Numbered from the stretch's first letter, positions 31,296 through 54,300 are shown. The stretch is 64,000 nt of DNA from Paragordius varius (GCA_964247055.1 OZ176050.1:5518001-5582000), one strand, 5' to 3'. Numbers and translations: made by a program. Notes: generated by a model from the letters alone, not told the origin.

Positions 31296-34140
31296 ATGGC
31301 AAGAAACGCCGAAAAAGCAATGACGGCTCTAAGCCGATGGAGAAAACTAAAAATGCAGGAAACTAATGTGATGACAGTTAAACGTCCATATTTGGCAAGC
31401 GAGTGTCACGACCTTCATAAGGCAGAAACCTGGCGCCGTCAGATCATTCGCGATATAGCTAAGAAGGTGTCCCAAATTCAAAACCGTAAAATTACTTGTA
31501 ATTTCTAGCTGGCTTGGGTGAGTTTCGCACACGGGACCTAAATGATGAGATCAACAAACTACTACGTGAAAAACGTCATTGGGAGGTGCGAATTAAAGAG
31601 CTCGGTGGTAGAGATTATTTATCAAGTTCACAATCCGTCAAAATATTAAATAGAGAGGGCAAAGAAATTCCATCAAACCCTGGTTACAAATATTTTGGAG
31701 CAGCTCGCGATTTACCTGGAGTTCGGGAACTTTTAGCTCCAGCTCAATGTAAAATAAAATAATTATTTGTACAAGCTTCACTTTTGGCAAATTATCACTG
31801 TATCTAGTTAAATTTAAACATACTATCCAAAGTGTAATTTGAACGGCTAATTATTTGATGTTTTAAATTAAATGACTTATATACGACGTTTTCCTGTAGC
31901 TTTTATTAATCCCCCAAGACAGTGGTCCCTAACCTTTTTTGTTCAAAAATTTCTAAATTTATAAAAGATCATGCACCCTCTTGCCAAAAAACAAAGATAA
32001 AATTGCAAAATTTATTATTAAATGCCATTTTATTATGCAAAAAACATTTTTTCAACCAAACGCAACATTTTTTTCAAGCAACGACAGCATTTTTCATCTA
32101 AACGCAAAACTTTTTTCAACCAAAGAACATTTTTCAATTTTTTTTATATTAGGACAATTTTAAGTCCTTAATTTTAAGCTATTGTATTAAATTTTAGCGT
32201 TGCCATATGATTTTTATTGTTTTATTATCAATATTTGATGATAAAGAGATTGATTTTCAAACATTTAATTTTGCCCATAAATATTTTTATTTATATTAAT
32301 TATTTTTTTATTTTACATATTTAGTTTAACCTATAATCAATTTATATAATATGCACTTCAAGGGTGTCCTTGAACATTCAAAGTTGTCCTTCACTTAAAG
32401 TTAATCCTTCAATATTTTAATTTTGATTATTTATCAAGCCATATAATATTCATCTATGCTATCATTTTAAACCTATTTAACCTAAACTTTTAAATGAAAA
32501 CCAACTTTTTTTTCATAAAGACCGTATTATTATTTTAAATAAATTTTTTTATCCATATAAATATCTAGGTTTTGTGGATTATTGATTGTAATATTTAGTT
32601 TAAAACATTAATAATTTTATAATATTTTTAAATTAAAGAAAGTTAGTTCGAAACAAATAAAGTCAAAAAATACTAATAAATAAAGATATTAGGTTAAATA
32701 TAAAAAATAGTTAATTACATATAAAAATAACGGTTGTATGCAAACTGCAAAAAATGTAAGGACGAACTTTAAATGTTCAAGGACATTCTTGAAGTGCAAA
32801 TTGTATAAATTGATTATAAGGGAAACTAAAGTTGTAAAAGAAAAAATAATGAATATAAATAAATAATGCAATTTATGGGCAAAATTAAAAAGTTTTAAAA
32901 TCAACTTACCATCATATTGATGATAAAAATAAAAATCATAATTCAACGCTAAAATTTAATTACATTAACTTAAAATTAAATTTAATATTTAAATTGTCAT
33001 AAAATAAAAAAAATTATCATTAAATAAAGTGTTGTTTTTGCTTGATGTTGTCTTTGCTTGAAAAAATGTTTCGTCTGACCAAAAAGTTTCGTTTTGAAAA
33101 CATGTTGTTGGTTGAAAAAATGTTGTTTTTGCATGAAAAATGGCATAAAAATCATAATCAATGAGATTCTTGCATCTGCTATTGTCGAAATATTTTTTTA
33201 TATCAGTGACAAATCTTGATAATTTGTGCCTGAAATCCTCATTAATTCTCCATTTGTTTCTAGTATTTTTTAATTAAATTTTCCAAATTTCACCCCACCA
33301 TCCCCCTAAATTTTTCTACGCCTCCCATTTGCGAACCATTGATATATTATTGGACCAGTGCAAAATCTTTTTTGAATTTTTATATATAAAATTTCCTGAT
33401 ATTATTAATTTTTAAAATTTTTATATTTTATTCAATCAATAGCTCAACAAGCAATTAAAAAAACAAAAGCCGAACTTATGCGTCATATTGACGCACATTA
33501 CTATGGTTACCTTGATGAAGACGACGGCCTTTTACTTCCAGAAGAGTGTATTGCTCAAAGAAATTGTAATTATTTTATTTCATTTTTTTATTTAAAATAA
33601 ATTATTTTAAAAAATCATTATTTCAAGCCGAATTCTTTTTTACCTATTTTATACTTTCGAGCCTAATCCGATTTTTATCCAATTTATAAATAAAAACTTA
33701 TTTAAATGTATATAACTAATATTTACGAATACTAAACTATGTTACAAAAAGCATTTATATTTAACGTTTTTTTCGTATTTTGAGCTCTATAAAATATTGT
33801 TATTTTAAAAGATCGTCAGAAATTAGTGGCAGAATGGGAAAAAAATAATGCTGGCCCTGAACACAAGGATAAAACAGTTGAAGAATTCGAAAAAGAATTA
33901 GAATCCGACCCCAATTATTTCGACTTTGCAGACGATATTCATTTCTCTGATGAAGTTATGGAAATTAAAATACCATCCCAGGAAGATGTATTATTTAAAA
34001 TTTTATATCCTATTATTTTATAATTAATTATTGTTTCAACCAATATTTTTTATTTATACATATTTTCATAGGTTGAAAACGCAATTTTAGAGAAAAAGAA
34101 ACAAGATCTCTTACGACAAATTGACGCCCAATATAGTTAA
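31296..34140 (+). CDS. ISY1: Pre-mRNA splicing factor ISY1 (Prp19/NTC complex), 5 exons, 265 aa
   Basis: Exons 31296-31485, 31509-31748, 33443-33565, 33812-33987, 34072-34140. All introns are GT-AG, phases are consistent, and the CDS totals 798 nt. Translation MARNAEKAMTALSRW...KKVSQIQNPGLGEFRTRDLNDEINKLLREKRHWE...YKYFGAARDLPGVRELL...KTKAELMRHIDAHYYGYLDEDDG...IPSQEDVENAILEKKKQDLL carries the recognisable ISY1 motifs. Confidence 0.95.
31920..33341. mobile_element. Non-autonomous element in ISY1 intron 2 with a long internal inverted repeat (arms ~32020-32395 and ~32755-33150) and hAT/Charlie-like ends
   Basis: The arms are clear reverse complements: TTTTAGCGTTG...GCCCATAAA...TGCACTTCAAG..GTCCTTGAACATT versus AATGTTCAAGGAC..CTTGAAGTGCA...TTTATGGGC...CAACGCTAAAA. 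The ends CAGTGGTCCCTAACC and GCGAACCATTG resemble hAT MITE termini but pair imperfectly, and no TSD was found. Confidence 0.65.
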
Positions 34141-34168
34141 AATAAATATATTGTTTTACATATTTATT
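34141..34168. terminator. Back-to-back polyadenylation signals: AATAAA on + at 34141-34146 (ISY1) and on - at 34163-34168 (AFG2)
   Basis: Both hexamers lie in the 36-bp spacer between the two convergent stop codons. Confidence 0.6.
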
Positions 34169-34176
34169 ACTAATTT

Positions 34177-42827
<8,651 letters not shown>

Positions 42828-43639
42828 GATTTCCAGTATTAAATTCGAAAATATTAATTTATTCTGAGTATATATTTATGTATCATATTTTAAAATATTT
42901 TACAATTTTTTTAATATTAAAAAACATGCTTAACCAAACATAAAAACGGTTACACATGATAATTGTTGCCCAAGTAAAAATTGAAAAGTATATTTTTAGA
43001 AACACAATTTTATCAGAGATATTATAGAGCGAATTCTATAACACATGTGTGAATTAATTGAAAATATGTAGATGTTAAAGGTAACAAATTAACACTTCAT
43101 TCTTTTTATAAAATTGCTTACCTTTGGCAATGTTAATTTTAAAATTCTTAATTTAAATAATACCATTAAAAGTTAAATATAAAGCATTACAAAATTATTT
43201 TGTTATAAATTTCTAAACCATATTAACAATTATTTTGCCTGTTGTATTGGCGAATTAAAATATCTTAAGAAACAAAAGCTAAAAAGTGTGATATAAGTAT
43301 TTTTAACAAATTTTAATTTTCTAATGAAAATTTTAAGCCTGAGGTTAAAAGGATATAGAAAACATATTTTTAAATATACTCTAACTTTTCAGGATAGTTT
43401 AAAATGGCTTTATATAAAACTACCCCAAAACATAATAAAGTTTTATATACTGTAATCTTACTGTGCCCATACGTAAAAATATATTAAATTTTAGGAAGTT
43501 TTATAAACCATTTTATATGATATCACTCTTTGGAGCGGTCATTTACGTAGACAACAATGTTATATAACCCTATCTATATAATCTTAGCGTTTTGGTTCGG
43601 TTTTACCATATCTCTTTTAACCGTATCTATCCGTTACTT

Positions 43640-51300: not shown

Positions 51301-54300
51301 GTGGAAATTAAATAAATTATTTTAATTTAATTATATTGTCAATACTAAAGTATATTATCCAAGCCTCGGTAATTTGCTTCTAAATAGCCCAGACTTAATT
51401 AAAGTTAAAATTTTAAGTAAACTACTGAAGGAAACGGTCCTAATTTAAATTTACCCTTCTATACTAATAAAGCCAATATATCTTAAGAAAATTTGTTTTA
51501 AAAAAAACTTCCATGTCAAACTAATTCGACGCTATATTTGTTTTACAAAACTTTCTCAAAATATCGTTTTCATATTATAAGGGTAAAACTAAGGATAATT
51601 TTTTATATAAATTATATCTAAAATTGATAGAAATAAAAAAGCGGGTTATTTTGCGTTATTTTTCAATATTACCATTGCACACATGTCATATCGACTAAAT
51701 TTTTACCTTTGGGTTTTACCTTAAAATATGTAATATCAAGTATTTTTGAAAAAATTTTAATATATTCCGGTTTATTGATGTTCTATAAGTGCAAAATTTT
51801 ACAATGGTTTTGATTCTTCCCATATTTTTTAAAAATTTAATTTTAAACAGGCCTGGGGTATCCAACTACCCCAATTTGCGAAGGACTAAAATGAATGTGT
51901 TGTATCCAAGTGTTTAAATACAAGCTCAGATGACAAATTGATAATGCCATTCTATTCTAATTAAAAATTAATTTCAAAAATATAGTCCACTCTTCACAAA
52001 ATCCAAAATAAATATAATTGTTTTTAAATATAAATTTTATGTTGTTTAAACAAAATTAGAATGTGCCTGCAATGTTTCCAATACCGTTGACGAATTTTGT
52101 ACATTTATGGGTTGCCAATGCAAAAATGGGTTTTATGGAAGACATTGTAACAATAGTAAAGCCATAAATTTTATAGGACATGCTATCTTTCATTGTGTTT
52201 AAGGATGTCTGTGCGTAGCATCAAACACTATAAATGGCGAATGCCTTCATGGGCAATGCAAATGTAAACCCAATTTTTATGGTCTGTACTGTGAAAAATG
52301 TAAAATTTTATGCCTTATTGAGAACCTTATAAAAATAAGTGTTTTATAATGACATTAATATTAGCGACACTCTGCAGAATTTAGGCAGTTGTAAGTTATA
52401 AATACAAAAGCCATTATATCTATATAAGTTTGTAAAAAGGCTTTAAGCAATATAAAACGGACTGACCTTTTCCTCATTATAGTAGAGCATCTTTTTGATT
52501 TGCCCTGTGTATAACCTCATTAGTTTTTTCCGGACAATGTATACTATTTCCCAGTCTAATTAAACGTTTTCCCAATCAATCGAAACATTTTCCCAATCAA
52601 TCGAAACGTTTTTCCAGTCAATCGAAACGTTTTCCCAGTCAATCGAAACATTTTCCCAATCAATAAAAACATTTACCCAATCAATAAAAACGTTTTCCCA
52701 GTCAATATAAACGGTTTTATTTTTAATGATAAATATCAACAAGATATTAACATAACTTTTAACCATTATCAGCCTAATTATAATTGTAATTTTTAAAAAA
52801 ACACAATTATAGAATGACAATTTTTCAATTATATTCCAGTGCACAATCATTAATGACATATTCTTTAAAAGTTATATTTTTTGGAATTTGAGATATTTTG
52901 AAGATAATATTTTTTACATCGATTCGCATTACTATTTGCGAACTTATAAAATCTATTACGGATGAAATAATAAAATTTATAAAAATATACCATTTTTATC
53001 TCAAATTTTTTAAACATGTCAAGTTTGTGGATAAAAGTACTGTCTTAAAAATATCTATAAAAAACATGTTTTTTAAAATATATTTTCGGCCGCATTTTTA
53101 ACTCAAAAGCACGGCTTTCGGCATTTAAAATATATACGGGCATTCTTTAACAATTTATTCGATTTTAGACGTAGGACTGTGAACTACAAACACAATATAA
53201 CAATTTATTTTAATTCCTTGCCAATTTAATAGACTTATATTCAGAATAATTGCGTAAGAAATATGAATTTCACAAAGATATTGTGGGCATATTTTTGCAT
53301 ATGGATTTCCAAATTTTTCGCGAGCTGCACAAAAATTTCGGAGGGCCGCGTTTGGCCACTCCTGGACCTGATAAATATTATATAAATTAGGGTATTTATG
53401 TTTATAATATCGAATATTAAGCGTTAAATGATTTTATGCGTAACTACAGACTTTATAAGTTAGTCTCGAATATTAATGCGAACCATTGATGAAATAAAAA
53501 ATTTATTAAATATTTTTTCTTAAAAACCATAAAATATTCATCCAGTTAATAAAATATAGCATTTAAAAAATAAGTCATTAATGATTGCGCATTGGAATAT
53601 AATTGGAAAAATTATTATTCAATAATTGTGTTTTTATAAAAAATAATCCCCTAATATTACGCTGATAATGGTTCAAAGTTATTTTTTAATCATTTGATAA
53701 TTATCAATAATAAAACCGTTTTTATTGACTGGGAAACGTTTTTATTGATTGGGAAAACGTTTTTATTGACTGGGAAAACGTTTTTATTGACTGGGAAAAT
53801 GTTTCTATTGACTGGCAAAATGTTTCGATTGACTGGGAAAACGTTTCGATTGACTGGGAAAACATTTCGAGGGACTCGGAAAATGTTTCGATTGACTGGG
53901 AAAACGTTTTTTTGACTGGGAAATGGTATATATCCTCCGATCATGGTCAATCTTCATTTTTAATCTTTCCAGTATCCTGTCCATCTATATATACTAACTG
54001 TTAATATCACCCTTGAACAATTCGAATTCACCCTTGAACAATTCGAATTCACACTTGAACAAATTAAACTTACCCTAAAAATAAATTATGTGTCTTCGAA
54101 CTAATATAACTTATTATTATTATAAAATATTTGGTGTAATTTATTATTTTTTCATTATAAATAATTTTATTGAGGGAGAATTTAGTTGTTAAAGGGACAT
54201 TTGTTCGAGGGTGAATTTAAAATGTTCAGGGGTGGATATGAGTTTAAGGGTAAATATGAATTGTAAATGGTATATTTTCCGATTCACAAATTTTTGTTTT

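Follow-up and report, generated by a model that had tools for sequence, protein, structure and literature searches.

Ultra-short introns ahead of long ones in two neighbouring genes and in a genome-wide sample of conserved genes

Two neighbouring genes each begin with an intron of 23 nt and carry far longer introns further on. Is this order peculiar to the pair, and are introns of this size genuine? The genes lie in a 64-kb stretch of AT-rich DNA (hereafter the window; GC ~23-33%), the first 27.8 kb of which consist of a 62-bp satellite with strong GC skew, genes starting after it. They stand tail to tail (Table 1), the one on the plus strand coding for the splicing factor ISY1 and the one on the minus strand for a two-ring AAA ATPase of the AFG2/SPATA5 type. 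Intron lengths in order are 23, 1694, 246 and 84 nt in ISY1 and 23, 25, 25, 25, 1064, 712, 1318, 555, 187, 312, 304, 464, 990 and 427 nt in AFG2, and the mini-introns fall at coding positions 28, 214, 367 and 457 of AFG2 and 190 of ISY1. An original prediction, made on reading the window, read this pattern as a bimodal intron system with ultra-short introns at the 5' ends of genes and longer ones, swollen by transposable elements (TEs), downstream. We revisited it in the two genes and in a sample of conserved genes from the rest of the genome.

Mini-introns of ISY1 and AFG2

The mini-intron of ISY1 interrupts a well conserved protein. Positions 1-65 of the Pfam family Isy1 lie on exon 1 and positions 67-141 on exon 2. 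The same junction is seen with the human and Caenorhabditis elegans proteins of solved spliceosome structures, in which residues 1-62 (human ISY1) and 1-63 (isy-1) correspond to exon 1 and residues 64-136 and 65-137, respectively, to exon 2. Residue 63 is the split codon, so that exactly 23 nt must be removed. By homology, the predicted 23-nt intron can be taken as confirmed. A protein word search with exon 2 returned no fragment of this species, the best identity being 76%.

The AFG2 model was obtained by a search from the ATG at 42827 (minus strand) that combined an open frame, GT-AG ends and the 14 predicted lengths in order. Exactly two gene models emerged, one of 15 exons and 739 codons plus stop and another differing only by a truncated end; with the ISY1 model, all of the predicted intron lengths are reproduced exactly. 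Exon 8 matches first-ring positions 314-355 of TIGR01243, and exons 11-13 match this family contiguously (450-519, 520-563 and 567-604), which fixes the boundaries of introns 11 and 12. The best eukaryotic match of exons 8 and 11 among solved structures is human AFG2A (SPATA5), p97 scoring nearly equally on exon 11 and an archaeal VCP-like ATPase slightly higher on exon 8. The name AFG2-like thus seems fair for this ATPase, short of proven orthology.

Table 1. Genes, introns and multi-copy DNA in the window (positions counted from its first nucleotide)
Feature	Position	Strand	Remarks
ISY1 splicing-factor gene	31296-34140	+	5 exons, 265 codons plus stop; Pfam Isy1, human and C. elegans ISY1 contiguous
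ISY1 exons	31296-31485, 31509-31748, 33443-33565, 33812-33987, 34072-34140	+	gene model
ISY1 intron 1	31486-31508	+	23 nt, GT-AG, phase 1, coding position 190
ISY1 intron 2	31749-33442	+	1694 nt; about two thirds fold-back element; exon 3 picks up at Pfam position 148
Fold-back mobile element	32005-33147		in ISY1 intron 2; arms 32022-32391 and 32758-33146, 75% alike
AFG2/SPATA5-like two-ring AAA ATPase gene	34177-42827	-	15 exons, 739 codons plus stop
AFG2 intron 1	42777-42799	-	23 nt, GT-AG, phase 1; frame logic only
AFG2 intron 2	42566-42590	-	25 nt, GT-AG, phase 1; between 61- and 50-codon open frames with in-frame coding bias
AFG2 intron 3	42388-42412	-	25 nt, GT-AG, phase 1; gene model, coding bias
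AFG2 intron 4	42273-42297	-	25 nt, GT-AG, phase 1; gene model, coding bias
AFG2 introns 5-14 and exons 6-14	34372-42038	-	introns of 1064, 712, 1318, 555, 187, 312, 304, 464, 990 and 427 nt
Multi-copy stretch, AFG2 intron 5	41550-41950		depth 60-150 against ~2-5 in the flanks (run X5); also raised in run X6
RTE-like non-LTR retrotransposon 3' tail	39458-39748	+	in AFG2 intron 7, antisense to AFG2
Multi-copy stretch, AFG2 intron 8 (putative MITE of the original prediction)	38150-38549		contig depth 259-655 (run X5)

Exons 2-5 of AFG2, which make up its N-terminal region, match no family in the exon-wise search, and its four mini-introns accordingly lie outside the reach of homology. All homology searches were run exon by exon. 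Evidence of another kind comes from the exons themselves. They are open frames of 61, 50, 29 and 77 codons; where stop codons make up 7.6% of background triplets, the probability that all four would be open by chance is ~3e-8. Their codon score in frame is -0.04 to +0.19 bits/codon, similar to that of the weakly conserved first-ring exons 6-7, against -0.25 to -0.80 in the five other frames and -0.30 to -0.65 in intron controls. The intron sequences, in turn, look like those of 13 homology-validated mini-introns elsewhere in the genome. The open frames, coding bias and sequence likeness provide indirect support for the four predicted introns, of which intron 1 is the least secure because exon 1 is only 28 nt long. 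The chance that four mini-introns would fill the first four of the 14 places in AFG2 is 1 in 1001.

Two small runs carrying the same species label and guessed to be RNA give no cover of 36950-42949, and five possible-RNA runs under that label contain almost none of the window. Among the listed runs in which the window is present, none is recorded as RNA. We infer splicing of the mini-introns from the sequence, and the genome offers many further cases from which to judge it.

Intron length classes and their order within genes

The sample comprises 172 homology-anchored introns in 84 genes of the 110.6-Mb assembly (44 contigs), none of them from the window. Nine Pfam families (CCT, proteasome, Ras, UQ_con, HSP70, DEAD, Arf, actin and kinesin) were searched exon by exon with their profiles, and where exon matches were contiguous on the profile, intron length was calculated by subtracting three times the gap on the profile from the genomic gap. 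In 72 of the 172 introns the boundaries were also refined on the sequence by a local open-frame rule; table coordinates supplied the lengths for UQ_con, HSP70, DEAD, Arf, actin and kinesin and for three Ras genes. Wherever both methods resolve an intron within the 72, they place it in the same class and agree in length to within a few nucleotides (e.g., 25, 25, 23, 22, 22, 29 and 28 nt). A separate ab initio scan of 198 kb for GT(16-60 nt)AG bridging open frames was dropped, being swamped by alternative in-frame GT/AG pairs with a period of 3.

Lengths in this sample fall into three classes. The ultra-short class (mini-introns) covers 19-31 nt with modes at 22, 23 and 25 nt (n = 29), the short class 46-90 nt (n = 26) and the long class 100 nt or more with a median of 496 nt (n = 117). 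No intron measures 35-45 nt and none 91-99 nt, and these empty gaps suggest that intron lengths in this genome are confined to permitted windows. The prediction of a bimodal system therefore holds as to the multimodality of lengths, with three classes in place of two. Mini-introns account for ~17% of the sampled introns (29 of 172) and are not the bulk of them. None of the 29 is divisible by three in length, in a six-frame search that is blind to mini-introns of such lengths.

Is the order seen in the window found in these genes as well? When introns of one gene are compared in pairs, mini-introns stand ahead of long introns in 17 pairs and behind in a single pair (p about 0.0005 by within-gene shuffling), and introns of up to 90 nt precede long ones by 45:8 (permutation p about 1e-4). 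Ten genes have both mini- and long introns, and in 9 of them every mini-intron lies ahead of every long intron; the median length rises from 76 nt for the first resolved intron to 396 nt for later ones (p = 0.0002). Families whose domain begins near the N-terminus have 2, 16 and 8 mini-introns in successive 150-nt bins over the first 450 nt of coding sequence. Of the 40 introns that these families have further downstream, none is mini, a limit that rests on few long genes because mini-introns mostly turned up in short proteins. The preference of ultra-short introns for 5' positions claimed for the window thus recurs in the 84 genes sampled independently, and length compared with ordinal position over the 172 introns shows that short introns are not randomly placed. 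Within the sample the short-first ordering generalises genome-wide and, on the evidence of sequence, is real.

The ordering is a tendency with exceptions. One Ras gene has introns of 46, 1388 and 31 nt, in which the order is reversed, and one actin-family gene (23, 234, 3135, 191, 64 and 82 nt) has short introns again towards the 3' end. In six small genes all introns are mini-introns. In the first tally of 145 introns, 13 genes had long introns only, some of them beginning at profile position ~50; the first anchored intron of several CCT genes, located around profile position ~50-70, already measures 232-1192 nt. That promoter-proximal introns stayed minimal, as had been proposed, holds as a tendency (17:1) but fails as a rule, many genes having long introns at the 5' end. 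Taken as a whole, the observation that prompted this work is partly confirmed.

Mobile DNA, the spliceosome and competing explanations

The long class spans 100 nt to several kb and consists in part of mobile-element DNA. The fold-back element of ISY1 intron 2 has at least 30 copies elsewhere in the genome, at 70-76% identity and in both orientations; without it ~550 nt of the intron remain. The RTE-like repeat in AFG2 intron 7 (260-290 nt) has many genomic copies at 90-94% identity. An overlapping open frame (39349-39636) ends in a tail of the form ...RLRWTGH...GRPFKSW..., which we take to be typical of RTE-like elements. Contig depth in two DNA runs peaks at 39350-39750 and over the two multi-copy stretches listed in Table 1, and from the latter two peaks AFG2 introns 5 and 8 also contain multi-copy DNA. 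Of the four long introns originally said to carry TEs, copy searches bear out the fold-back element and the RTE-like tail, and depth identifies the other two, with a putative second RTE and a putative MITE, as multi-copy.

Removal of the mini-introns would seem to call for nothing unusual. All 18 that were sequenced, 13 elsewhere and five in the window, are GT...AG introns of 22-31 nt with a uniform pattern, GTWT...YAG. T occupies position 4 in 15 of the 18, against 22 of 50 long introns (hand count), and none of the 18 sequences has a U12-type donor (/RTATCCTT). The genome contains many copies of U2 snRNA, the best of which (177.7 bits) has an intact canonical GTAGTA branch-site box in its 5' region, and an SF1-HH domain was found. 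As the mini-introns are of the GT-AG kind and free of U12-type donors, U2 snRNA is canonical and SF1 is represented by a domain, the proposal that a single spliceosome works in both intron modes is plausible, and one ordinary major spliceosome may well serve all intron classes. A single ordinary major spliceosome is also what was found in myxozoans (PMC13644364).

The explanation that we consider probable is a genome-wide, three-class system of GT-AG introns in which the ultra-short class is held to the first ~450-500 nt of coding sequence, ahead of long introns, by limits on where it is tolerated. The ordinary major spliceosome would pair the donor and acceptor of a mini-intron directly across the intron and would accept only a narrow range of lengths. 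Because this range would be narrow, a mini-intron could not grow gradually, and to leave its class it would need a large insertion, which would typically be a mobile element. If ultra-short introns were spliced or tolerated only near the transcript start, they would be restricted to 5' positions, and introns further downstream would be free to gather insertions. A stricter form of this mechanism is conceivable, in which introns of 22-31 nt are removed only within ~0.5 kb of the transcript start, perhaps in connection with the cap or early transcription, so that one machinery would handle all three classes and the animal would represent a third lineage with introns below 30 nt. Such position-gated splicing remains a speculative proposal, on balance rather unlikely.

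How do other accounts fare against this one? The original prediction envisaged a miniaturised ancestor in which all introns were ~23-25 nt, most being later inflated by mobile elements and those near promoters kept minimal by selection against insertions. The long introns do hold copies of mobile elements of different ages (70-76% identity for the fold-back element, 90-94% for the RTE tail), mini-introns do come first within genes, and some small genes still have mini-introns only. However, the separate class of 46-90 nt matches the published minimum for animal introns (PMC13644364), and because of this match the 22-31 nt class could be the derived one rather than the ancestral. Many genes also have long introns right at the 5' end, and the remainder of ISY1 intron 2 is still far from minimal once its fold-back element is subtracted. 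We regard descent from such an ancestor as possible though unlikely, and the interpretation as a whole as partly supported. Nothing in these data speaks for the myxozoan or dicyemid affinity that it brought up.

Neutral feedback on target size, in which tiny and large insertion targets drive intron lengths apart by chance alone and any 5' bias is put down to the type of gene or to sampling, accounts for the discrete classes and for the genes with all-mini or all-long introns. It predicts no order within genes, yet the 17:1 and 45:8 ratios (p about 0.0005 and 1e-4) are rarely reached by shuffling, and the four mini-introns of AFG2 are the first four of 14; we hold it to be improbable. For this reason we prefer a limit on the positions at which ultra-short introns can be tolerated, as target-size feedback would explain the classes but not their order within genes. 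Might the mini-introns instead be unspliced, the product of a faulty assembly, of decaying genes or of wrongly modelled coding sequence? The RNA runs and the protein word search, which yielded no junction, count for this account, but 29 independent cases in conserved domains, together with ISY1, restore profile continuity, the 13 sequence-checked cases and the five of the window are uniformly GT...AG and 22-31 nt long, and the genes are otherwise intact housekeeping genes, which makes this reading very hard to credit.

Parallels in other animals

In a survey of 51 animal genomes, introns below 30 nt are reported only from myxobolid Myxozoa and Dicyema (Hadjez et al., Mol Biol Evol 2026, PMC13644364). 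In the myxobolids and Dicyema japonicum the ultra-short class forms the bulk of introns, with medians of 22-27 nt and in compact genomes (PMC13644364). The present genome resembles those of the myxobolids and Dicyema in having ~20-30 nt GT-AG introns between conserved exons and a canonical U2 snRNA, and in belonging to a parasitic animal. The donor motif is reduced in both, to GTWT here and to 'GTa' there (PMC13644364). Unlike in those lineages, the ultra-short class of the present genome amounts to ~17% of the introns in the sample, keeps to the starts of genes and exists alongside a 46-90 nt class and long introns that bear TEs.

The ordering has its closest parallels in flatworms. The Schistosoma mansoni genome, as described by Berriman and colleagues in 2009, reportedly has small 5' introns and large 3' introns. 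In Gyrodactylus salaris, for which modes of 32 and 58 nt were compared, most introns at ordinal positions 1-2 belong to a ~32-nt mode (Hahn et al. 2014, PMC4040987), and tapeworms have bimodal introns (Tsai et al. 2013, as cited in PMC4040987). As in flatworms, lengths here are multimodal, with the shortest mode concentrated at the first ordinal positions and longer introns later. The short mode is nevertheless 22-25 nt here against ~32-36 nt there, and whereas mean intron length in Gyrodactylus falls with ordinal position overall (PMC4040987), median length here rises (76 to 396 nt). The likeness to the flatworm ordering would be convergent if the animal is a horsehair worm. The genome preprint of Gordionus montsenyensis makes no mention of introns.

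The short class of 46-90 nt fits the minimal-intron class of animals, given as ~50-90 nt (Yu et al. 2002, as cited in PMC4040987, PMC13644364). An extra class of 22-31 nt lies below it, with an empty gap between the two. What this genome combines are two known things, the ultra-short introns of a few animals and the short-first ordering of the flatworm type.

If the finding is true, the genome would add a further animal lineage with introns below 30 nt. How such introns are recognised is a question raised by the 51-genome survey (PMC13644364), and the present genome would offer a contrast within one organism, whose cells, and frequently a single gene, contain ultra-short, short and long introns sorted by position. 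This contrast bears on what sets minimal intron length and on whether distance from the transcript start matters. There would also be practical consequences for annotation, as gene finders and aligners with a minimum intron above ~30 nt would be expected to break such genes at their 5' ends. Breaks of this kind could depress measures of completeness and make gene loss in the group look greater than it is.

Mini-intron lengths, donor sequence and U2 copies

The ultra-short GT-AG introns (mini-introns; 29 in the genome-wide sample of 172 introns and five in the window, one in ISY1 and four in AFG2) have lengths of 19, 22, 23, 25, 26, 28, 29 and 31 nt, none of them divisible by three. The six-frame method is blind to mini-introns with lengths divisible by three, and therefore the absence of such lengths may be a detection effect. 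The mini-intron donor is GTWT: 15 of 18 mini-introns have T as the fourth base, compared with 22 of 50 long introns (≥100 nt; hand count). The donor GTAAGT was found in none of 18 mini-introns but is present in both the 46-90 nt and long classes.

At least 35 U2 snRNA copies in the assembly score above the gathering score. The copies are clustered, and several lie less than about 10 kb from contig ends (see table).

Repeat arrays and two identical Arf genes

The window opens with a 62-bp satellite array of approximately 450 copies, which match one another at 80-93% and have a very strong GC skew (+0.6); the first genes begin shortly past its end. Two further arrays of 21-nt units (63-nt higher order) lie within the region originally labeled as an EGF gene. 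As their consensus units are mutual reverse complements and they are spaced approximately 1 kb apart, the pair resembles a further fold-back-like structure.

Two small contigs each carry an intronless Arf gene, and the two genes are identical (E = 5e-75, equal scores). The contigs may be duplicates or haplotigs; a recent duplication and foreign DNA are further possible explanations.

Positions of features in the window and in its assembly (G000; C, contig)
Feature	Sequence	Position
62-bp satellite array	window	1-27791
AFG2 intron 8, insertion-deletion difference	window	38081-38196
AFG2 exon 7, expected Walker B site	window	40037-40077
21-nt-unit array	window	52547-52718
21-nt-unit array	window	53713-53923
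Intronless Arf gene	C10	1742354-1742872
Intronless Arf gene	C11	1307069-1307587
U2 snRNA cluster	C3	257000-528000
U2 snRNA cluster	C2	11950000-11988000
U2 snRNA cluster	C5	12727000-12788000
U2 snRNA, near contig end	C8	6857
U2 snRNA, near contig end	C6	8570
U2 snRNA, near contig end	C4	7260
U2 snRNA, near contig end	C1	15223126

AFG2 intron 8 and the first AAA ring

In the multi-copy part of AFG2 intron 8, one contig from the DNA sequencing run X5 has 29 other letters in place of 114 nt. Elsewhere in this gene, the first AAA ring retains an intact Walker A motif (GPSGVGKT, exon 6), but the expected site of the Walker B acidic pair reads VVIDNIE, both read by eye. The first AAA ring of AFG2 is probably not a working ATPase.
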